DNA of 63,992 nucleotides, the filler included, from Hyphochytrium catenoides (lineage: Eukaryota; Protista; Hyphochytriomycota): NCBI GenBank assembly GCA_900088475.1. It is 16 parts of 16 records of this genome, joined end to end, with 100 filler letters (N's around TTAATTAATTAA, not from the genome) between each part and the next. Parts side by side here need not be neighbours in the genome. Positions count along the whole stretch, not along the records: positions 25,011 to 39,489 come from FLMG01001539.1; 15 more parts are not named here. The stretch is one strand, 5' to 3'. Below, piece by piece: positions 24,911 to 39,589 of this stretch. The translations under genes were made by a program, and so were the position numbers. Below the pieces are notes generated by a model. It was not told the DNA's origin, searched no databases, and saw nothing but the letters and a program-made list of their open reading frames with translations. Positions within the stretch are counted from its first letter, which is position 1, and the number at the start of each line of letters is the position of its first letter.

Positions 24911-25820
24911 NNNNNNNNNNNNNNNNNNNNNNNNNNNNNNNNNNNNNNNNNNNNTTAATTAATTAANNNNNNNNNNNNNNNNNNNNNNNNNNNNNNNNNN
25001 NNNNNNNNNNGAAGATTTGAAGAATGATAATGATAGGCGGCGACGAAGGATCATCATCATCACCACGAGGTGGTCTTGCTGTCAGCTTCCATTCACTGCG
25101 ACAAGGTTCCCTGGGGTCTTCCATGTTCGAGAAACGTTCTATTTCTATTATAGGATCAGAAGAAGACGGCCAACACAAGCGAGCACAAAGAAAACTATTC
25201 ATGTATATACGGAAGAAGAAAGAGGTAGGCAAATGTGATGAGAGCGCTATTTCTGAAAAAGGAGGAGGAGGAGGGTGCTTTACTCATCGATTACTCGCAT
25301 AACAATATCTAATCTTCTTCCACCACCGCCACGTACTCCTCAAGATATATCTCATCACGATGATTAACCTCATCATCATTTGACTTGTTGTTCTAGTGCC
25401 TCAACTATTGCCATTGCTCTGATCCTCCTGCAACAACATCATCTCTTCTGTCCTTGCTCCTCTTCTCTTCCTCTCCTCCCTGGCTGTGTTTTCTTCTTGT
25501 TATGACAGTGGTGGACAGAGCAGGTGGGTGGGAGTTCCGAGTAGTAGTACAGTGAGTATGACAAAGATTAGCACCGTCTCCCTCCCGGCCTTGGAGCTTC
25601 CCACCCACTCTCTCTTCTTGTACGTCGTAAAATTGATGAAAATTTCACAACCCAAATCCTCATTTTCTCCCTTTTGAGAATCCGCCGCCTAGGAGATTAC
25701 CACTGAGCGGTAGGAGGTAGGAGGGCAGAAAGGGCTTTTAGAGCAGAGTTGTGTCCGCTAAGGATCCATTGGATTGTCAGCAGCACTGCTGTAACGTCCA
25801 ACTAAAGGTCATCTCTCTCT

Positions 25821-25858
<38 letters not shown>

Positions 25859-27038
25859 CTCCTTCCTCTCTCTCTCTCTCTCCCTCTCTCTCTCNNNNNN
25901 NNNNNNNNNNNNNNNNNNNNNNNNNNNNNNNNNNNNNNNNNNNNNNNNNNNNNNNNNNNNNNNNNNNNNNNNNNNNNNNNNNNNNNNNNNNNNNNNNNNN
26001 NNNNNNNNNNNNNNNNNNNNNNNNNNNTCTCTCTCTCTCTCTCTTTGCTGTAGCTTTCAAGAAGGGCCCATCAAGACACATCACGTTCCACTTCTTTTTG
26101 TCGTTTCGTTGTCCGTTGCCTGCCCACCCTTCGTCACCTTACGCGCTACTAGGATGCTGTGGAGAAGGGAAACAGTGTATCATCGAAGGTCGTCTCTGGT
26201 CTCCCTCCTCCTCGTCTCTGTCCCTTCCTCTTCCCGCCTCCTCCTCTTCTTTACCTTGTCGGTGCGTTGTCAGGATCGAGGAGGAGGACCAGCGAGGAAG
26301 AGCAGAGCAACCTACTAGAAGAAGAGAAAAAGAGAGAAGATGATGGGAGAGAATAGACCAACAAGAAAGAGAAAAAAAGAAGAAGCAGAGCAGGGAAGAG
26401 ATAATGATTGAGGAGTGGAAAGGAGAGAGAGCGACAGAAAAAGAGAGAGAGAGAGAGAGAGAGAGAGGAGAAACAGAGAGACAGACAAAGAGAGAGAGAG
26501 AGAGAGAGAGAGTCAGAGAGAGAGAAAGAGAAAGAGAGGGAAAGAATGGGTCCTTCATCGGGCAGAGAGACCTGCATCTAAGAGAGAGAGAGAGAAGTGA
26601 GCTTGATAAAAGCTGAGTTCCATTCTTATCCATCCTATCTACGGATGACTAGCGGCTCTATCTTCTTCATCGACGGCCTCCTCAGCGGGAGCAGAGCGAA
26701 GGAGGAGCAAGAAATAGAGTAAACAAAAGTAAGGCAGATCCTCTTCTCTGCCGCCCCAGCGCGTTCATCCATAGCCCTTCCTCTGCACCAGTGGCAGACT
26801 GTTCCTGTCGTCGGGCAGGAGCAGCAGTGAGAGGCGGGTAGCGCAGATTGTAAGTATTCTTTACCTTACAGAACCATCGTCTCGGTCCATCAGCACGTCT
26901 CATCTATAACGTGAAGAAGTATTTGTCCAGTGGTCTCTTCTCTTCTGTCTATTTGGCACTTAGTTTTCTCTGTACGGATCGTCCACTCCTAGAAGGCTAG
27001 AGGAGAATCCACGCTGCTGACACGTCCTTCCTGACCCA

Positions 27039-29551
27039 ATGGCGGAAGATACCACCAGCAGCAGTAGCAGCAGCAGCGCCAGCGAGACTGACAGCAGCAG
27101 CAGACAGGCACTTGAGCAGTTCTGCTTCGTCTGGTTCATCTGCACTCTTATTGCCAGTGTCGCTGTGTCCACGCTCTTCTATCTTCGACGACACATCTAT
27201 CCGATATGCGCAGTGCCCGTCATCTGGCCCATTCTCACCCACCTGAGCATCCCTCTCGCTGTCTATTCGTATCTCTTTATGCTGCTCCAGAGACCTCTGG
27301 GGACCGGCTGCTATGGCTTTAACGCTTACATCTTGCCGGTGATGCAATATGTTCCCACTCTTCCTCCCTTTGAAGCCCAGCTGGTGCACCTCTGGTACAC
27401 CTACCAGACCCAGACCGCTCAGCTACTGGCGCCGTCTCTCAACTCTTCGGGTAGACGAGGATCAGTGACAGGGTCCGAGGAAGAAGGGCAACGTGGACTG
27501 CAGCAGAAGAAGGAGAAGAAGAGGCGTCCAGCCTGGTTCTACTATGCCAGCGTCTGCGCGTTCACCTGTCTGATTGTGAGTCAGACGCTCATCACGACGA
27601 TTATCGACCATGTCGCTGACAATTACGATGAGCGGACGTGTGAAGGCAACACTCCTGTCGCAGTGAGTCTTCCACCAGACCTCGCCTCCTCTGTTTTCTT
27701 CGTTCTTCTCTCTTTCGTTTGCTCTGTTCTTCTCTCCCTTCTTGGTCATACTTTGAGGTGCTGGTGTTTATAACGTCGATGCCTTTCTTTCCTCGTGGTC
27801 TCTTTCGTATGGAACCTGTTCTGTCTGACCTCTTTAGCAGACTCTAGATCTATCTTTTACCGGCTTTCCACCTAGCGGCCATAGGTCCGCTGTCATTCAG
27901 CTATTATGTTGCCGAGCCTCCTCGTTTGCAAGTGCTGCGATCCGCGGTACCCTATAGTCCTTGATCTACTTTCTCCCCGCTAGGTCGTTCCTGGCCTTAC
28001 CTTATTCAGGCTACTGACCCTGTCTCTTCTCTCTCTTGCCTGTCTGTATGTCTCTTTCTCTCTCTCTGTCTCCTTCTTTGGCGCGTCTCTCTCTCTCAGA
28101 AATATAGCCAGCTGGCTTCTGCTTCCTTTGTCATTACGCTTAGCCTCACCTTGGCCTACCAGCTTAGGGACGTGGAAGAAGAGTTCAATCTGAAGAAGCA
28201 GCTGAAGATCCTAACCTTGCTTGCCCTGACTCTAGCTGTTCCGCTGCGTGCCGTCAACCTCTTCATCGTCAATGCTCTCACTCTGGACCTAGAGAGGATC
28301 ATCCTAGCCGCCGTATACACTGGGTACACCGTCATCTGTGGCTTCTATCCTCTCTATCTCAGTTATAAGGAAGAGAAGCGACGCCGCGCTCTCCTCCAGA
28401 GACACTCGTCATCGAAGACAAGCTTCCTCGGAGTGCGGAGCGTTCATCAGCTTCGTGTGGTGATCGGAGACGTGAAGAATGAGCCTATCATCGGGCGGTT
28501 TAGGGATTATCTCGTGAAGGAGTTCTGCTGTGGGTTGCCCATCTTATCTTGAGCTTATTGACATGTTGAACCTCTACTTTTCCATCTTATCTTCCCTCTC
28601 TCTGTCCCCATCTGCTTGTCTCTCTTCTCTTTTTGGTATGCTCTCTCTCTCTCTCGCCGCTCTCTCCTATCTTCCTTTCTCCTCTCTGTCCCGCTTTATC
28701 TCTTCTTCTCTCGTTATAATGGTCTCTCCCTCTATCTCTATCTCTCTTCCCCCTGCATATCTTCCCTTCTCTCTGTCCGCTCACTCTCTTCTCTCGTTGT
28801 AATGCTCTCTCTCTTCCTCTCTCTCTCCCGTGTTCTCCTCTTCCTTCGCTTTACTTTCACCTTCGTCATTCTTACTCTTCGTATCCGGCCACGTCGCGCC
28901 GGACACCTTGTCACATCGCTGTTTCCCCCCGTTTGTATGACATTTTATCATCAGCAAATCGTCCTCTGATATCCTAACGCTTCTCTCACCATCGATTGCA
29001 TCATCTTCTCTTTTTCATCTCCATCTCTTCCTCTCTTCTCTTTCTATGTGCCTCTTTTTTTCTATGTAGGCGAGAACCTGCTGTTCGTCCTTTCTGTACT
29101 GAAGTTCCGCCAGATGGCTCCCGGCGCTGAGATGCTGAAGATGGCAAAGTCTATTGGCAGCGTCTATCTGATGCCAGAGGCGACTATGGAAATCAACATT
29201 AGCTCCTCCTTGAAGAGCAACATTCAGCGCATCATTAGAGAGCTCAAAGAAGAGACTGTGGGGAGAGACATCTACGAGAAGGTGGAGCAAGAAGTCTATC
29301 AGATGCTAGTCGATCCTTTCAACCGCTTTCTCACGCGAGCCAAGGTCCGGGCTGACGAAGTTGTTATTATAGAAGAAGGAGAGGAAGGGGTCGCCTCAGG
29401 TCCTGATGGAGGAAAAGTAGAGAAGAGTAGCGGCCCAACGTCTTCTGTTGGCTTGGGAGTCATCGGTCGGTTGGGGTCACAGGGAAAAGTTGCGTTGAAG
29501 GGGAAGACAAATAAGCAACCCGCTGTGGCGCCAATGACACAGATAGGGTGA
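27039..29551 (+). CDS. 7TM-RGS protein, copy A (exons 27039-27662, 28100-28529, 29070-29551; ~511 aa)
   Basis: Seven hydrophobic segments followed by an RGS box (FRDYLVKEFC|CENLLFVLSVLKFR…YLMPEATMEINIS…IYEKVEQEVYQMLVDPFNRF). The GT-AG introns keep the frame. Confidence 0.9.
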
Positions 29552-29648
29552 GGGCTTTCACCACAGGGAAAAGTTGCGTTGAAGGGGAAGACCAATAAGC
29601 AAACCGCCGCTGTGGCGCCAATGACACAGATAGGGTGAGGGCTTTCAC
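29478..29648 (+). repeat. ~85-bp tandem duplication spanning the stop codon of RGS copy A
   Basis: cacagggaaaagttgcg…gggctttcac occurs at 29478 and 29562; the second copy is 3 nt longer. Confidence 0.92.
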
Positions 29649-30713
29649 CACTCGTAGCGGTTCAAGAGTAGAGCCGGCTCCTCTCGTACAGCGGTAGGAG
29701 TTCCTGCTAGCTCCTAGCTGGTGGAGGCCGGCGATGAGACCAGAAAGACATAGACTAGGGCTGATAACATAAGAGCACGACCTTCAGACAGACTTTGCTC
29801 TCACGTGACAAACAGAAGACAGGCTTTGGACTGAGATAGTGTGCTCCGCTTCTTGTCTATATTTTGCCGCTGCCCGTCCTTCTGCTCCTCGGTAGGGGGG
29901 AAAGAAGGCGAATAGATTTTGTCTCTTTCTCTTCGTTGTTTCCGCTATCAGCCTATATCTGTCTGTCTTCTACCGTTATCCTTATCTCTCCTCTCCTCTG
30001 TCTCTTTATCCTTCCTCTGCCCCGCTCCTCTCTTCTTCTTCTCTCCTTCTGAACGCGCCCTTAATCCTCTCATGAGTTGTGAGAATCGGGAGCTCGCGCA
30101 GCAGCAGGAACAGGGGAATTAGCAAGCTGACTTATGACTGTTAGCGATGAGCATCATCTACATTGTCTACGAGTGGGCGGTCCTGCAGCTTTCCAGCTTC
30201 TCTTTTCGTCTCTCTTGGGACCTCATCGCTGCGTCCGATGTCCCCAATGCCTGTTGTCCTTGTCTCTTTCCCACTGTCTGAAAGAGGTCCCAGCCATCTC
30301 CCCTAACATCATACTTTCTTGCTCTTCCAGGTCATCGTCCGCTCCACTTCCTTCATCGTAGGCTGCAGGCCATACGGACTCATATACTCCTTCACAACGA
30401 GTTCCAGCCATCGGTATAGAAGATCTTGTGTCAAATGCGGGACAATAAGGATCCCCTTGGTTCACAGTTTGTAGAGTGAAGCCAGGGACAGCAGCTTCCC
30501 TGCTGAAACTAGTTCTGCAACTCGTTATCCTTCCGGATTGAATAGTCAAGCTCCGCCCATATCTGCCTGACAGGGAAAGGCGGATGGACTCTACGCTTAT
30601 GAGGACACACCTGACGCACTTTTTAAGCAAAGTGTTCTTCGGTGGTGGCGAAAGACCTTCTCGTTCCCTCTGGCTCCTCCTCGGCCTGCATAACCCAAGG
30701 ATTTCTCAAGTCG

Positions 30714-33260
30714 TCAGAAGCCTTCCATCTCCTGCTCAGAAAAATGCCAGTCTTCAGTGTCTTCCTGGTACGCAGAGGGCCAGAAGTTGCCAGAGGGTTT
30801 CTCTAACTCATCAGCAATGTGCTGCAGCCCCAAGTCTCCTAGTTCTTCGGAGACTAAGCTGTGCTGCTGCGTGATTTGCTGGTACCGTTCCGGGATGAAG
30901 TCGACGATGTGACGTGGCTCCTGGAGACCTTCATCCACACTCTTCATATCTTCTATTGAGACCTCCATCCTCCCAGCAGAGGCCATCGCCCTCCTCCGAG
31001 CCGCTAGACGTGGCACAGCATGCGAATAGAAGCACAGGTTTTCCCACCACTGTTCGCGAAGGTAGTCCGCCATATGTGGCGCGTAAAAGGGGTTCGGGGC
31101 TAACAATGGCGAGTCATGCTCTGTCGCCCTCGTCTCTGGTGTCCATGTATGGACAGTCCTCTCTAGGCCCAGCCGGGGCGCTGAGATACGGACGTAAACG
31201 GCCCTCGAGGAGCATGACAGCCGAAACAGCTTGAAGACCAGACATTCATATCCGCGGTAAGTAAGCCTGGTCTCGCCAACCACTTCCATGTCATCACAGT
31301 TGTCTGAGAAAAATGAGCGGTCAATCTTTCTGCGAGATGCGTCTGAGGCACGCACGAAGCGAGCCGTCCTCAGCAGATCTTCCAGATCCCGGTGGAACGC
31401 GTCGTCATCGTCAGAGTCAGCGTCGTCGGTTCTTAGTGCTTCCCCTTCATAATTAATCCACGCCTCTGTAGCGCCATCTCCCTCCTCCAGACCATCAGAC
31501 GGGATCGTCAAAGTGCTGTCTTTGTCCACCCTCAAGGCCGGACGCCGCATGAGGAAGTCATAGAGCAGTTGGTGTGAAGTAGCCAAAGAGATGTTTGGGG
31601 ATCGCCTGTACACGTCCAGCACCAACCTCGACGCAAGCCGACATAGATCGCTCCTATGGACCCATTTCGCGATAGTCTTGCGAGTGATACTCTCTTGACA
31701 CCAGTCGCTTATTGCTATTTTCATGTCCATTGTGCACCAGACCACGATGCAGAGTTCATCGGCAGCACTAGAGAATACCACGCGCCTATACTTCTCCAAC
31801 GTCATTCCACAGTTCAAGGATGATATCAACCCACGAGCGACAGCTGCAGAACACTCTGTCTTTATATACCTGAAGAGGTCTTTCCGCTTTGGAAAGAGTA
31901 TCGTCATGTCGTCTGCAACATTTTGGAAGAAGGTGGAGACAGTCTTCGCGTCCAATCGTGCAGTCCAGACGTCTGCTATGGAACAGACGGAACCTGGATC
32001 TCCGCCTCCCCTCTGTCTTATCCCTGGCACAGCCAATATCCCCTGATAGATCGGCATGGTCTTAGCTTTTCGCCCACAATGCAGCCACATGGCGCATTCG
32101 GCTGTATCAGAGCGTCTAATCTCTGCCACCGTACCCTCCATAGCATAGAAACATAAGCCTACGTCAGGCTCTACCAGCTCCGCCATCAGTGCTAACCCTG
32201 TTAGCCGCCAGGCGAAGAGAGTGAGATGAGGGAGCGATTGAAACAGGCGAACAAAGGAGAAGATCTCTTCATGCTCTTCGAAAGTTGCTCTACGGCATCG
32301 TCCTCCTCGTTCCAGCTCTTTGACATTGTACGCAGTCTCCTCAAAATTGACCTCCCTACATGCACTATCCAAAGCTGGGACGAGAGCAAGAGGAGATCCA
32401 GTGCTGCGTAAGAGGAGAGTAGACTTTATCGTTCGAGCGGCAGAAGCCGAAGGTTGGCCCGTGATATTTCTGGCAGCAAGGCGCTCTGGATCAGCCATAC
32501 TTCTGTGCCGCTTCCTAGCGGTTGATGGCTTGGTTGTGACTTTGAGGACATCTAGGAAGTCGGCTCTGTCGATGCCTCTCACATCCCCAAACATTTTGCT
32601 AGCCAGATGCAGACAAGGTCTCTTATCCGCGAACTTGGCCAGTATTCTAACTGTTGAAGAGGATTCATTCACAAGGTCACCCATGGGAATCTTGATGATC
32701 AAGAGAGACCGCTTCTGCCCATTGCAGGGGTCAAGATCACTGTTCCTACATCCAGAGCAATAAACCGTGACTTTGAGACACGTCATCAGATTTTCTCTCT
32801 TCTGCGTCCGGTTCACATATTCCTTCGGTAGATAGTCCCGAAGTATGGCTGAGAGCTGCGGGTCATGACCGCGCTTCACCCAGAGGTAAGGCGGTTGTGC
32901 CCTCTTCTTTTGCACCGAAATGGTGCCAGGAACCGCCCTGGAAGGAGTCCAAGGTGCCGCCCGTCGACAATACGCTGAGAGGAAATCCTTCCTGCTATAG
33001 TGGATGGTAAAGTCTCTCTTTTCATTGGAGAAGAGAAGGAGGCACTCTCCATCGCTTCTCCGTACCTGCACAGTCCTTGGAGGGGCATACTGATGGATCG
33101 CCTCACGCTGCATAAGGTTGCTATCGTCAGCATCTGCTTCGAGGTCAGATGTGGCTGGTCCAACGCCTGGGTCTTGTCCCGACCTGCGGGTCTCGTTGTC
33201 CTTGACGGTCATGACTTTACATTCAACTGAAAGATCTGTCGTCTCTAAGGAGATATCCAT
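30714..33260 (-). CDS. Intact intronless ~850-aa Mutator/NOF-FB-type transposase-like protein with substituted catalytic motifs
   Basis: Motif order: VRGIDR, NITGQPSASAARTIKS, CFYAMEGTV (cf. DATG), IKTECSAAVARGLISSLN (cf. D-x-S-xALxxA), VWCTMD (cf. C/DxxH), NPFYAP…LCFYS, SAGRMEV (cf. SA-x-VES). Recognised from memory of the family; start codon uncertain. Confidence 0.65.
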   Translation of the reverse strand: MDISLETTDLSVECKVMTVKDNETRRSGQDPGVGPATSDLEADADDSNLMQREAIHQYAPPRTVQVRRSDGECLLLFSNEKRDFTIHYSRKDFLSAYCRRAAPWTPSRAVPGTISVQKKRAQPPYLWVKRGHDPQLSAILRDYLPKEYVNRTQKRENLMTCLKVTVYCSGCRNSDLDPCNGQKRSLLIIKIPMGDLVNESSSTVRILAKFADKRPCLHLASKMFGDVRGIDRADFLDVLKVTTKPSTARKRHRSMADPERLAARNITGQPSASAARTIKSTLLLRSTGSPLALVPALDSACREVNFEETAYNVKELERGGRCRRATFEEHEEIFSFVRLFQSLPHLTLFAWRLTGLALMAELVEPDVGLCFYAMEGTVAEIRRSDTAECAMWLHCGRKAKTMPIYQGILAVPGIRQRGGGDPGSVCSIADVWTARLDAKTVSTFFQNVADDMTILFPKRKDLFRYIKTECSAAVARGLISSLNCGMTLEKYRRVVFSSAADELCIVVWCTMDMKIAISDWCQESITRKTIAKWVHRSDLCRLASRLVLDVYRRSPNISLATSHQLLYDFLMRRPALRVDKDSTLTIPSDGLEEGDGATEAWINYEGEALRTDDADSDDDDAFHRDLEDLLRTARFVRASDASRRKIDRSFFSDNCDDMEVVGETRLTYRGYECLVFKLFRLSCSSRAVYVRISAPRLGLERTVHTWTPETRATEHDSPLLAPNPFYAPHMADYLREQWWENLCFYSHAVPRLAARRRAMASAGRMEVSIEDMKSVDEGLQEPRHIVDFIPERYQQITQQHSLVSEELGDLGLQHIADELEKPSGNFWPSAYQEDTEDWHFSEQEMEGF

Positions 33261-36252
33261 CGTCAACGTAAGCAAGGAGAAGGGGAAGGGACAGAGGAAG
33301 AAGACAAAGAGGCCGGGAAAGCAGCCAAGGAGAGTGAGAAACAGCGAGAAATGAGTCTACCGAAGAAGATAGGACGAACTTGGAGCTCGAATCATTGAGA
33401 GAGACCATTTGTGACTTTGGACAGCGCAGAGAGAGAGAAGACAAGAGCGTAAACACGAATCTCACCTTTATCTAACCCTGGACAAAGGTCTTCGAAGGAC
33501 ACGACCTTTGTTCTTCTATCATCGTAGGGACCTCGGCTCGACAATGGCCGTCGCTATTGAAGGTCAGATTGCCAGGCAGTGGCAGGTGATGATGTCCCGG
33601 CAGCCTGATGATGATTAAGAAGAACCCAAAGAAGACAGACACAGAGAGAGACCGAGAGTCCTGTTCACCAAGCGAGAGCCTCTTGGACAACGAGCGCCGC
33701 GGACCGCACCGCTATGGTTGGAAGAATCTCGGGAGTCGGCTTCGATGTCGTCTCCAGAGTCGTGAGGACAACGTCAGCACCCACGGTCGCAGTTCTTCCT
33801 TTTCGCCTGCCTTCTCTCTGCTCCGCCACTGCCATCAGGCGCTCCTGCAGCTTCTTCTTCTATTGCTCGCTGGCCCAGGCTCTGTCTGAGTCGCTGCTGC
33901 TGCTGCTTCTAGCGATGATGAAGAAATAGGAAAGGAAAGCGGCTTCAGAAGACAGAGAAAATTGGCGATGAAGACAGATCGACAGTATTGGACCTTCTTT
34001 GGTAGAAAGAGGGACCAAAAGGGATTTTAGAATACTGGGCCTACCATCACAAAATGTGTCACGCCTGCAAATGGAATGTTCTGCTCTGTTATTATCTATG
34101 GCGCAACCACCCAGCTCGCCCCACAACAATGTTTCAACTCATTTCGACAGGTCGCACTCCGTACACAACTCTGTCTAGGCAAATAAGACGTTAATGGCTG
34201 TATATTTGTATCTCTACCTGTCTCTGAGGTGGATGTCATGAATATATCTGCTAGTGCCAATCAGACCTACAGGCCGCCAGCCGCCACAGGTCTGTCGGAC
34301 CATGTGATCCAAAACTCTTTCCTCGATAATAATCTATGTGGAACCAATAATATTAATCTTCTTCTGCTGCTGCATGCAGGTCAGTATCTGCTGATAGAAG
34401 ATCCGCCAACGGTGGCAGCAGCACTGAACTATCACAATCTATAGACGCCGCTGCTGCTGCGCGCTCCTCGTCGGTGCTGCTCACTGCTGCGGTCGGTGAA
34501 GAATCCTCACTCGCCGAGGGCGGCGGCGGCGGTGAAGAAGAAGAAGAAGATATACAGAAGAGCTGCTGGCTGATGAAAAAGGAAGAAGAAGAGGTTGATG
34601 ATGATCATTGATGATGATGGTGGGGGCGGTGGTGGGGGAAGAGCTGGAAGAGACGGGAAAGAATGCTCCAGAAATTTGGAGGTAGAGGGTAGTAATGAAG
34701 AAGGCGGCAAGGATTATTATTGAGATGAATTGATAATCTATAGTAGCTCCTCCTCCTCCCTCCTCTGGCTCCTCCTCCTCCCTCCTCTGGCTCCTCCTCC
34801 CTCCTCCGCCTCCTCCACCATCCTCCTCCTCTGTCCTTTTCCTCAGCGACGTCATGATGTATGGTCCTCCTCCCTCCTCCTCGCTCATCGTGTTGTTATC
34901 GCCGGTGGCGTGGCAAGCCCTAAGAAGCCCGTCGACTGTAAATATTCGGAATAGTGAACCTGTAATGCCCACCTGTAGTGGTTCTTCGTTAACTATCAGG
35001 AATCTAGGGGTTGCTAGGACCCTTAGATCAGGAATGAGAGCCCTCTATGATAGAGTACACGGGGACCACCTACAGTACACCAAAGAAGGAGGAGGAGGAG
35101 GAGGGACGAAACAGTAGTCGCATCATCACCACCACAGCAGCAGCTCCGCTCCGAGGCAGCAGCAGTAGCAGCAGCGGCAGCAGGCCGCTCGACCGACCCG
35201 GGAGCAGCATCAACGACGCGTGGAGAGTAATAAAGCAGAAGAAGAAAGGGAGCAGCTGAGACAGTCTCGGGATTAGCCAAGACTGCGCCACGGATCGAAT
35301 CTGCAGACTACTTTCTGATGCCGCGATGAGCTCCAGATACCGGCCGACAGATACCGATAACGAATCCGCAAAGAGAACTAATCTGAGCTGGCAGCGCAAC
35401 AGTCAGAAGAGCCTCAGTGCAGCTTCTAGGCAGTAGTAGTAAGTCTAACTAGCGAGCGGCCTTCTAGCAGGAAGTAGTAGCGTGTCTAGCGTTACAACGG
35501 TAGAGCCATATCCCGACTCACTGTCACTGCTTTCGTGTTCCTACTTCCTACTGCTCCTATTCATCTATCCTGGCTTCTCTTCTCTGTCTTTCTCTCTGTG
35601 CTCCCTCTGATCCCCTCGTCTCTTGCTGCTCTTGCCTACATCCCTACATCTTCGCGTACACTACTCTACTGCTTAACACACATTATCCCCCTACTACTGT
35701 TCTTCACACCCGAAGATCTCTCCCCTCTGACCATGACTCCTCGATTCCCCTACTGGCCTCTCCAACTCCTTCCTTACCTTCTGCCATCTCCCAGTCCCTG
35801 GCATGTTCTGATCTTCTGATGACGCACTGTGAAGCTCCAGCCATCTCCAAGTACCGTGAGAGAATCCCAGAACCTTCTCATCTAAATCGCAAATGGGCCA
35901 GTCAGAAGCTTCACAAGCTCCCGCAGCTGCTTGAGCTCCAGACGTCCTGTTACAGATGGAGAGAAAGACAAGATTGGAAGAAAGACGGCAGCAACAGACA
36001 AGAGAAGAGTAAATGAGGAAAGAGGATAGGAATGTTCCCAGCATCGTGCCTTATCTCTTCTTCTTCTACGACGCCACTGACCGTTCCTGCAGGACGTTCG
36101 AGAAAACTAGCGACTATGGCTTATATTATGTTTATCCACCACCACCAGCTTCTTCGTCTTCCTCTGATCCCCGCCTAGCTGCCGCCACACGGCTATTAGC
36201 CCTCTATTCTACCGACAATCAACTAATTAAAACATCAGGTCAGTTGCTACTG

Positions 36253-38383
36253 CTAGTTGGTCGGGGTTCCTCCTACTCCAACGATCTGCTCCGCCGTCGC
36301 AAGCGGTGCCACAGCTGTTTTTTTGGGCTCCGTCTTCACCGAAACTTTTCTCTGTGACCCCGCGGCGCGTCCTCTAACTAAAGCCACCGGAAGAGACGCT
36401 GATAGTCTCTTCTTGTCATCGCCTCCTCCTTTAGAGGGCGAAGTCTCCTCGTCTTCTTCCTTGATAACCACTTCGTCAGCACGGACCTTGGCTCGCGCGA
36501 GAAAGCGGTTGAAGGGATCGACTAGCATCTGATAGACTTCTTGCTCCACCCGCTCATAGAGTTCCTTCTCCACAGTTTCTTCCTTTAGCTCTTTCACCTT
36601 GCGCTGTATATCGCTCTTCAAGGTGGAGCTAATGTTGATCTCCATAGTTGCCTCTGGCATCAGATAGACACTTCCAATAGCCTTCGCCATCTTCAGCATC
36701 TCAGCGCCAGGAGCCATCTGGCGGAACTTTAGAACTGAGAGGACGAACAGGAGGTTCTCGCCTACACAGATAAGAAAAGAAAGATGCAGCGGAGGAGAGA
36801 AGAGAGGGTGTCGTAAGCCGCGCACTGCAGGGAGGGATGAGAGAAGGAGGAAGGTGATAGCATGGTGGGTCCTAGAAGGGTTAAGATCCGCTCACTGTCT
36901 TTCTTAGAACACAGAGAGAACGGAGGACAAAGGCGTCAACAAGGCGAGACACGGGAAAAAAGGAATTTACGGAGGAGAAGAGTAACAGGGACAAGCTGAG
37001 GCACGCTTGGCCAGTTCCTCGGACAGCTTTAGCACTGAGACCAGGAACTCACAGCAGAACTCCTTCACGAGATAATCCTTAAACCTCCCGATGATAGGCT
37101 CATTCTTGACGTCCCCGATCACCACACGAAGCTGGTAAACGCTCCGCACTCCGAGGAAGGTTGTGTTGGTTGAGGCCCGCCTAAACAGAACAGCGCGGCG
37201 CCTTTTCTCTTCCTTATAACTGAGAGAGAGAGGATAGAAGCCACAGATGACGGTGTACCCAGTGTATACGGCGGCTAGGATGATCCTCTCTAGGTCCAGA
37301 ATGAGAGCATTGACGATGAAAAGGTTGACAGCACGCAGCGGGACAGCAAGAGTCAGGGCAAGCAAGGTTAGGATCTTTAGCTGCTTCTTCAGATTGAACT
37401 CTTCTTCCACGTCCCTAAGCTGGTAGGCCAAGGTGAGGCTGAGCGTGATGACAAAGGACGCAGAAGCCAGCTGGCTATATTTCTGCAAGAAGCACCATCA
37501 GGTTAGGAAGGGAGAGAAAGTCAGCAATATAGAAGGAGCAGCCTTAACAACTTATAAAGGGATCAACGTTGCAGCAGGTAACGAGCCTCGCTGCAGAAGA
37601 GTCGACTGTAGAATGTCAAGCTTGTATAGAGTCGATAACGATTGGCAAGCTGAGCTATTGACGGCGAACAGAAGGAAGAGCAGATTGCTGTAGAAGAATG
37701 GAGACTAGAAGAGAGAACGACTAACTCAAACGCCAACAGCAGCCGAAGCTGACAAAAGGAGAGAAGAGAAGAAGAAAGAAACAGAGTGATAGGGGAAGGG
37801 GTAATAAGGGGAGACTCACAGCGACAGGAGTGTTGCCTTCACACGTCCGCTCATCGTAATTGTCAGCGACATGGTCGACAACCGTCGTGATGAGCGTCTG
37901 ACTCACAATTAGACAGGTGAACGCGCAGACGCTGGCATAGTAGAACCACGCTGGACGCCTCTTCTTCTCTTCCGTCTTTTGTTTCTTCTTCCCGGCTATC
38001 GCAGTGACGGAAGAATCTTTCCTCGAGCTAAGAGACGGCGCCAGTAGCTGAGCGGTCTGGGTCTGGTAGGTATACCAGAGGTGCACCAGCTGGGCTTCAA
38101 AGGGAGGAAGAGCGGGAACATATTGCATCACCGGCAAGATGTAAGCGTTAAAGCCATAGCATCCGGTCCCCAGAGGTCTCTGGAGCAGCATGAAGAGATA
38201 GGAATAGACAGCGAGCGGGACGCTCAGATGGGTGAGAATGGGCCAGATGACGGGCACGGCGCGGATCGGATAGATGTGTCGTCGGAGATAGAAGAGCGTG
38301 GACACAGCGACACTGGCAATAATGGTGCAGATGAACCAGACAAAGCAGAACTGCTCAAGTGCCTGTCTGCTGCTATCAGTCAT
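36253..38383 (-). CDS. 7TM-RGS protein, copy B (exons 38383-37820, 37482-37053, 36761-36253; ~500 aa)
   Basis: Same intron positions and phases as copy A, and the same 430-nt exon 2; TM and RGS sequences are near-identical. Confidence 0.9.
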
Positions 38384-39203
38384 TGTCCTAAAAGCCAGGC
38401 ACACAGCGGAGCCTTCGTGGGTTGACTGGCGAACTATAGCCGATTTGTACCCTCTACTGCAGCTCGGCGACTGACAGGGGAAAGAGACGAGAGGAGAAAA
38501 GGATTTCAACAGTCAACAGGCAGTCTCAGCAAACTCAACGCATGGCGGGTGATTCCAATAGAGTAGCATCGGGGCTTTTTCTGAGGTGTGGGACGATGAG
38601 AAGAGGTCCTTCTACTAGAAGAGAGGTCAGTCTCTTTCTGCTTGTAGCTGCGGCCCGGATGATTGCCGACGACGTATTTGGGCCATGACAGAAGACTCGC
38701 AAGAAAGGAACAGTGAGATAAAGAAGAGCGATAGGAGGAGATGACGAAGAGGAGGAGACAATGTGGGATGAGAGCGAGGAAGAGAGAAGAAGCTGGGTAA
38801 GCGAAAGGTGTTACGGTGATGAGATGACGAGCTAGAGGAGGATTTGCTCGTTGAGTCTCATGTCCAGCAGAGTCATTCATGCATTGTGTTACCGGTCCTT
38901 ACTCTTGTGGGAAGAGGTAGCTGAGAAGAGTGATACGTCGGCATCGGCGAAGGATAACGGTAAGGACGAGGGCTTGCAACGGAAGGGACGGCTCCCTTCT
39001 TCTTCTCTTCTTTCCTCTCCTCTCAACTCTCTTCAGGGTTCCCGCTCCATCTCCCTTCTATACAAGCTCACAATAGCTTTTTTTTCCACTTAGTCCACAG
39101 ACCTTCCGCTCTCTCTTCTTCGATAATTTTCTGTTAGGTGGCCTAAGTTTCTTTTTGCGGAAGAGAAGGACCACAGAGGGTGGTGGCAGTCCGATTGGAA
39201 GAA

Positions 39204-39283
<80 letters not shown>

Positions 39284-39445
39284 CAGAAGAGTTGTAGAAG
39301 GGTCGGGAGAAATTTGTTGGAAAGAAGAGAGAGACGGTAAAGGATGGGCATAGAGATAGACACCTTTAGCAACAAGGACCGTTCAGACAGCAGCTACATT
39401 CAAGGCTGCGGATACGAGGCTGTTAAGTGATGATGATAAAGAAAG

Positions 39446-39478
<33 letters not shown>

Positions 39479-39589
39479 GGAGAGAGAGANNNNNNNNNNN
39501 NNNNNNNNNNNNNNNNNNNNNNNNNNNNNNNNNTTAATTAATTAANNNNNNNNNNNNNNNNNNNNNNNNNNNNNNNNNNNNNNNNNNNN

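Follow-up and report, generated by a model that had tools for sequence, protein, structure and literature searches.

An old inverted duplication of a putative 7TM-RGS gene and a probably transposase-derived open reading frame in Hyphochytrium catenoides

Do two inverted RGS genes and the large open reading frame (ORF) lying between them make up one genetic element, or are they neighbours of separate history? This question is raised by a stretch of DNA from Hyphochytrium catenoides (assembly GCA_900088475.1; the window, filler included, comprises 63,992 nucleotides), in which the original prediction had seen a foldback-like cassette consisting of two genes for seven-transmembrane (7TM) RGS proteins around a NOF-type, transposase-like gene. 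The piece analysed here extends over positions 25011-39489 (record FLMG01001539.1; GC content ~0.52), and the predicted three-gene layout, with its positions, orientations and freedom from gaps, was borne out by the six-frame ORF list and the translations. RGS-A (+), ORF853 (-) and RGS-B (-) follow each other within one gap-free stretch (26028-39489), the sole run of N's in the piece (25895-26027) being located outside the finding. The two RGS genes are convergent, tail-to-tail, with 6,701 bp from the stop of RGS-A (29551) to that of RGS-B (36253), and ORF853 sits off-centre in this spacer, the RGS-A stop being 1.2 kb away and the RGS-B stop 3.0 kb away. The explanation favoured here, to which a probability of roughly 0.5 can be given, is that of an old inverted 7TM-RGS duplication and a separate recruited or relic transposase-like gene, not of a single element.

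Each of the two RGS genes is made of three exons, RGS-A (27039-29551, + strand) encoding 511 aa and RGS-B (38383-36253, - strand) 500 aa. In RGS-A, exon 1 (27039..27662) begins with the ATG at 27039, spans 208 codons and ends in phase 0 in front of the donor GTGAGT at 27663; it encodes an N-terminal poly-Ser run and the first hydrophobic segments. Exon 2 (28100..28529; 143 codons and 1 nt) lies between the acceptor CAG at 28097-28099 and the donor GTGGGT at 28530 and encodes three hydrophobic segments, followed by a basic linker and the beginning of the RGS box. Exon 3 (29070..29551), preceded by the acceptor TAG at 29067-29069, encodes the RGS domain and a variable C-terminal tail up to the stop at 29549-29551. 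On the minus strand, RGS-B is composed of exon 1 (37820..38383; 188 codons from the ATG at 38383-38381), exon 2 (37053..37482, delimited by its splice sites and by the exon alignment) and exon 3 (36253..36761, RGS domain and tail, stop at 36253-36255). The introns of both copies are spliceosomal and have identical positions and phases and GT-AG borders (GTGAGT or GTGGGT ... CAG or TAG).

Searched and analysed exon by exon, the two proteins both carry an RGS domain: Pfam RGS (PF00615, cut-off 23.9 bits) is found in exon 3 of RGS-A with 42.2 bits (E 1.3e-10) and in exon 3 of RGS-B with 42.9 bits (E 7.2e-11). The nearest solved chain to RGS-B exon 3 is human RGS10 (PDB 2dlr, E 1e-3), and in RGS-A as well as RGS-B the motifs 'ENLLF' and 'EINIS' correspond, in the alignment, to 'ENVLF' and 'QVNVE' of RGS10. 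The Glu-Asn pair and the Asn matching RGS4 Asn128 are G-alpha contact residues in the RGS4-G-alpha structures, and these residues are in place in the RGS box of both copies. Kyte-Doolittle hydropathy, run per exon, gives three segments at 1.2 or above in exon 1 and three in exon 2, and a weaker seventh one can be read by eye at about residues 90-112 of exon 1; a Lys/Arg-rich linker separates the hydrophobic segments from the RGS box. The 7TM-RGS architecture would thereby fit both copies, with the reservation, which counts against it, that the seven helices are supported by hydropathy on separate exons alone. The membrane domain matches no Pfam family, and no relatives of RGS-B exon 1 were found by a word-based protein search. 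By analogy with AtRGS1 and the class VI receptors of fungi, RGS-A and RGS-B are presumed to act as membrane-anchored GTPase accelerators for a G-alpha subunit.

Beyond these shared traits, the two proteins differ in several places. A CAG/AGC repeat (27056-27094) encodes the N-terminal serine run of RGS-A, which is absent from RGS-B, and indels are also found in the loop before the fourth hydrophobic segment. At the other end of RGS-A, an 87-bp unit is present twice in tandem (29478..29651, + strand, 95% matches) across the last codons and the stop, so that the C-terminal coding end recurs, in the second copy, immediately after the gene. In addition, a CT-rich tandem repeat of 42 nt is located within intron 2 of RGS-A (28678-28814).

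How the two copies came to face each other is best approached through the extent of their similarity. When the piece is compared with itself by blastn, three inverted blocks only are obtained, all far above chance, and these coincide with the three exon pairs: 27096-27673 with 38374-37809 for exon 1 (90% DNA identity), 28097-28536 with 37485-37046 for exon 2 (440 nt, 92%) and 29030-29385 with 36807-36446 for exon 3 (85%), the arms including ~345 nt at 95-97% identity. In a base-by-base alignment, the similarity starts and ends at the splice sites. The introns retain no more than faint similarity and differ in length, 437 versus 337 nt for the first pair (z 4.6 against shuffled sequences) and 540 versus 291 nt for the second (z 2.6), and neither the 400 nt outside the start codons (z -0.9) nor the 400 nt beyond the stop codons (z 0.3) show any likeness above that of shuffled sequence. 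Moreover, no repeat or hidden symmetry came to light when the outer flanks were compared by blastn and tblastx and the spacer was compared with itself by tblastx, and the search for a direct repeat abutting the arm ends, as expected from a target-site duplication (TSD), returned none, only two non-adjacent 9-mers.

Divergence at synonymous sites (dS) and the ratio of non-synonymous to synonymous divergence (dN/dS) were calculated per exon with the Nei-Gojobori method, on the ungapped parts of exon 1 and on the RGS part of exon 3. Between RGS-A and RGS-B, dS amounts to 0.10-0.16 in exon 1, 0.23 in exon 2 and 0.48 in exon 3, while dN/dS stays at 0.10-0.28 throughout (0.18 in exon 2). Since the similarity is limited to exons, dN/dS is 0.10-0.28 and dS is 0.10-0.48, the RGS pair is an old inverted duplication of a whole gene, both copies of which are under purifying selection. 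The synonymous divergence of the exons is well below the divergence of the introns, and it rises from exon 1 to exon 3. This gradient, together with the diverged introns, may stem from gene conversion restricted to the exons of the inverted copies; alternatively, synonymous sites may be constrained while indels in the CT-rich introns turn over rapidly.

These data do not support the foldback-like cassette, because its supposed arms are the exons of a selected host gene, of which neither introns nor flanks are shared. Terminal inverted repeats (TIRs) and TSDs, which were sought around the RGS pair as well as around ORF853, were found around neither. For ORF853, the longest inverted pair within 29560-36300 is a low-complexity one of 37 nt at 70%, and no TIRs are present within 3 kb on either side. 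A recent foldback or TIR origin of the arms was accordingly rejected, given the confinement of the similarity to exons, the unshared flanks and the absence of a TSD. Capture by a Pack-MULE, meaning by a Mutator-like element (MULE) carrying host sequence, was rejected as well, in view of two complete RGS copies with intact splice sites and dN/dS of 0.10-0.28.

The gene enclosed by the pair, ORF853 (30714..33275, - strand), is intact over 853 codons if a TTG is taken as its start, and over 848 if the first ATG (33260) is. Its frame is devoid of internal stops, the other five frames carry 20-49 of them, and the chance expectation for such a frame at this composition is 2e-17. A chance ORF was rejected on this figure, and ORF853 is therefore considered a real coding sequence, kept open by selection or of recent origin. 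Codon usage, compared between ORF853 and the RGS genes, was uninformative, an out-of-frame control giving the same correlation.

Relatives of ORF853 are extremely scarce. An exhaustive phmmer search of 1.84 billion cluster representatives returned three, with no annotated MULE among them: a protein of 1239 aa from a Logan assembly (P0001, the best relative, E 1e-20), another Logan protein of 391 aa (P0002) and a partial one of 581 aa from Rhizophagus irregularis (P0003, CAG8742914.1). None of these three matches from the library of 1.8e9 proteins is NOF, whose presence in the library is unconfirmed, and the NOF-type label given to ORF853 is unsupported, no match to NOF or to any named protein having been obtained. 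A metagenome scan, for which the family alignment served as query, brought in five short contigs (L001-L005) from soil, with a GC content of 0.25-0.27. These are 37-83% identical to the R. irregularis protein and several of them contain in-frame stops, so as to look like an unclassified, decaying multi-copy element of Glomeromycota-like genomes for which Pfam has no model; a transposon family would behave likewise. All other searches were negative in their respective scopes: at E <= 0.1-10, Pfam and NCBIfam gave no family for ORF853 or P0001-P0003, and Pfam gave none for the metagenome ORFs; word-based protein searches with ORF853 and with the P0001 core yielded no relatives; ORF853 had no tblastn match in phages and P0001 none in plasmids, nor did one result from a scan of viral contigs with the ORF853 family; and the family profile found noise only among PDB sequences. 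The family is a thin one, with two full-length members.

ORF853 and P0001 are collinear over residues 140-827 of ORF853 (E 2e-23), and three modules can be delimited in this region. The N-terminal one (residues 140-300; 32376..32858, - strand) contains the putative zinc ligands C173, C176, C221 and H223 and is 33% identical to P0001 (z 21); its C-x2-C...C-x-H columns are invariant in ORF853, P0001 and P0003. It is followed by a degenerate DDE-like core (residues 340-540; 31656..32258, - strand; 25% identity to P0001, z 11.8), which BLASTP and global alignment place in the same register. Past a linker that is unalignable with P0001, the C-terminal module (residues 725-830; 30786..31103, - strand) displays NPF, W743/W744 and E771, reaches 39% identity to P0001 (z 27) and is common to all nine family sequences (ORF853, P0001-P0003 and L001-L005). 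Within its C-terminal motif, ORF853 differs at positions where the eight other sequences are all alike.

The origin of ORF853 is suggested by the succession of conserved residues in P0001, namely the zinc ligands, D596 (FFDVTG), D695 (IQTDCS), C741-x2-H744, W972 and E999 (TVESKFN), which is the order known from MULE transposases. In Muta1, transposition requires each of D214, D283, H307, W401 and E419 (PMC5225508). At the positions matching those of P0001, ORF853 has Y377 in place of D596, E474 in place of D695, C514xxD517 with Asp in place of H744, and then W743 and E771; three of the five MULE-essential positions are replaced, and the zinc ligands, the Trp and the Glu are kept. Besides, the nearest neighbours of the P0001 core in ESM space are clusters of MULE, ZSWIM1-3 RNaseH-like and SWIM proteins (0.94, 171 shared features). 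Of the ten best matches of this core that bear a family, nine belong to one family or clan, MULE and related, it being noted that in this search one third of shuffled proteins have all ten matches within a single clan. ORF853 itself points to the same families at 0.87, which is below 0.9 and constitutes a lead only.

Several observations weigh against a Mutator-like origin. The motifs were assigned by analogy and not from an alignment to a true MULE, and the spacings in P0001 (D-99-D-49-H, and 304 residues between D and E) greatly exceed those of Muta1 (69, 24 and 136). No hidden Markov model (HMM), sequence or PDB search joins the ORF853 family to MULE (PF10551), Transposase_mut (PF00872), IS256 or a named transposase. 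In terms of structure, the AlphaFold2 model of whole ORF853 has a pLDDT of 30 and is unusable for recognising an RNase H-like fold, and that of the zinc module is beta-rich with a pLDDT of 49, without a Foldseek match in the PDB. Because the motif order of P0001 and its ESM neighbours speak in favour of a Mutator-like transposase ancestry, and the searches and structure predictions against it, this ancestry is rated as probable. The description of ORF853 as transposase-like in the original prediction is hence retained in part: a Mutator kind is plausible from the ESM neighbours and the motif order of P0001, while an HMM or sequence link is lacking and three MULE-essential residues are missing.

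With these replacements, ORF853 is predicted to be unable to cut DNA. Neutral decay that had replaced three of the five essential residues would be expected to have brought many stops as well, none of which is present, and the frame therefore seems to be kept by selection. ORF853 would then most likely be an immobile, selectively kept gene derived from a transposase, a judgement to be read with the caution due to a single sequence. The preferred role is a non-catalytic one, most simply DNA binding through the zinc module, which would fail if the catalytic assignment were wrong.

The succession of events proposed for the locus is the following. A three-exon gene of 7TM-RGS architecture was duplicated long ago, in inverted, tail-to-tail orientation, and both copies have been retained by purifying selection. 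ORF853, for its part, would descend from a rare and deeply diverged family of DDE transposases with a Mutator-like motif order. It would have kept the zinc-ligand module, presumably DNA-binding, and the C-terminal W...E module, and would have lost the first Asp and the His of the CxxH motif and exchanged the second Asp for Glu. It may finally persist as a recruited DNA-binding protein under selection, not as a mobile element.

Other explanations link the genes more closely. A transposon may itself have made the inverted duplication, through alternative transposition, foldback- or Pack-MULE-like capture or repair around an element that bore ORF853 and has since decayed. The location of a transposase-like ORF between the arms speaks for it, as do the assignment of most foldback elements to the Mutator superfamily (PMC4079207) and the capture of host genes by MULEs (PMC6446971). 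However, each arm is a whole gene with its introns, maintained by purifying selection, and not a fragment, the similarity of the arms stops at the exon borders, the outer and inner flanks share no repeat or TSD, ORF853 is off-centre and the spacer has no internal symmetry, while at dS of 0.1-0.5 the event would be too old for testable scars. This explanation is hence quite improbable, an ancient transposon-mediated origin being possible but unsupported. A stable three-gene cassette, of which the 6.7-kb core would flip between the inverted RGS exons and thereby change the neighbours of the ORF or of the RGS 3' ends, would draw on arms that hold 440 nt of 92% identity and ~345 nt of 95-97% identity, as well as on exon dS values (0.10-0.23 in exons 1-2, 0.48 in exon 3) which, in the first two exons, are far below intron divergence and fit exon-limited gene conversion, a form of physical exchange between the arms. 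Yet this contrast between exons and introns is also accounted for by selection acting on synonymous sites or by a fast turnover of indels in the CT-rich introns, a crossover within the arms would give chimeric RGS genes and not a clean switch, and the one assembled sequence bears no sign of a second orientation, of a recombinase or of recombination sites. Furthermore, no relative of the layout was found, either in the word search with RGS-B exon 1 or in a metagenome scan with the RGS exon-2 alignment, in which no related locus appeared. Recombination between exon tracts of 92-97% identity may occasionally invert the core, a possibility without support, and the flipping cassette as such is extremely unlikely. 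Hardly more credit can be given to a combined scenario, in which ORF853 would be an independently domesticated, dead Mutator-like transposase and the RGS exons would still be undergoing gene conversion, with occasional flips of the 6.7-kb core, so that the three genes would form a recombining unit. None of the data unite the three genes as a single element or a functional cassette.

The remaining alternatives concern ORF853 alone. It may not derive from a transposase at all and may represent a lineage-restricted zinc-binding family with a spurious resemblance to MULEs. The lack of a Pfam or NCBIfam match for any member, of a PDB relative and of a confident structural model is in line with this idea, and so are the ESM score of ORF853 below 0.9 and the behaviour of shuffled proteins in that search. 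Against it stand the result for the P0001 core (0.94, 171 shared features, 9 of 10 matches related to MULE), the order D, D, CxxH, W, E after an N-terminal zinc module, and the low-GC relatives, which behave as decaying multi-copy repeats; such an origin is considered unlikely, to an extent that still calls for attention. Conversely, ORF853 could encode a transposase that is active, or was until very recently, and belongs to an unrecognised element, in which case the catalytic residues would have been wrongly assigned. Its frame is indeed intact over 853 codons, and two full-length members are too few to fix catalytic residues with certainty. Nevertheless, the absence of TIRs within 3 kb, the changes at C-terminal-motif positions otherwise invariant in eight members and the replacement of three of the five MULE-essential positions make this highly doubtful. 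An old RGS duplication next to a separately recruited or relic transposase-like gene is consequently preferred.

As regards the surroundings of these genes, the 3-kb part of the spacer between ORF853 and RGS-B (33276..36252) has no recognisable gene and consists of low-complexity CTC/GAG tracts and short ORFs without family matches. Pfam gave no match for any spacer ORF of at least 80 aa, tblastn found no match between positions 33276-36252 and the relatives of ORF853, and Rfam and tRNA scans detected nothing. A CTC-rich tandem repeat of 22 nt (34746-34833) underlies a spurious low-complexity ORF of 163 aa at 34481-34972. Long (TC)n/(GA)n microsatellites are situated near both ends of the piece (25812-25894, 26423-26538, 39200-39283 and 39447-39489), the run of N's at 25895-26027 beginning directly after a (TC)n tract. 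These terminal microsatellites account for most of the 'inverted repeats' reported by the repeat finder and are not element termini.

In terms of significance, the locus extends by one the lineages in which 7TM-RGS regulators are duplicated; these regulators form a class of receptor-like GTPase-activating proteins (GAPs) that is absent from animals. ORF853 points to a very rare transposase-like family without a Pfam model, represented by three relatives among 1.8 billion representative proteins and by decaying copies in Glomeromycota-like metagenome contigs. Its apparent retention after the loss of the cutting residues would, if confirmed, add to the examples of domesticated transposases from lineages other than plants and animals. 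An undescribed cassette of the foldback or invertible kind finds no support, and the value of the present analysis lies mainly in correcting this idea.

Compared with known systems, the two RGS genes resemble the 7TM-RGS proteins, such as AtRGS1, the fungal class VI proteins GprK and MoRgs7, and those of Naegleria and Trichomonas, in that they have the same N-terminal multi-pass domain, basic linker and C-terminal RGS box. This architecture is widespread in non-metazoan eukaryotes (PMC3971589; PMC3386157; PMC9283941), and animals are without 7TM-RGS genes (PMC3971589). RGS-A and RGS-B differ from these proteins in that their membrane domain has no Pfam family, word-based searches with exon 1 gave no relative, and their seventh helix is weak by hydropathy.

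With regard to MULEs such as Muta1 of Aedes aegypti and MuDR, the likeness is carried by P0001, in which an N-terminal zinc module precedes the order D, D, CxxH, W, E. ORF853, in contrast, has Y, E and D at the positions of the first D, the second D and the H, without long TIRs or an 8-10 bp TSD, and its family differs further by the lack of a PF10551 or PF00872 match and by the longer motif spacings of P0001. ORF853 can also be compared to domesticated MULE genes such as FHY3/FAR1 and MUSTANG, which likewise have no TIRs and keep the zinc module, and the domestication of MULEs is documented (PMC6446971); unlike in these genes, the domestication of ORF853 is deduced solely from its open frame and its replaced catalytic residues. 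Finally, the locus shares with the Drosophila FB-NOF and other foldback elements a large ORF between inverted repeats. It differs in that the repeated parts are exons belonging to a host gene under selection, with unrepeated introns, promoters and flanks, no TSDs and no detected similarity to NOF or to any other named protein.

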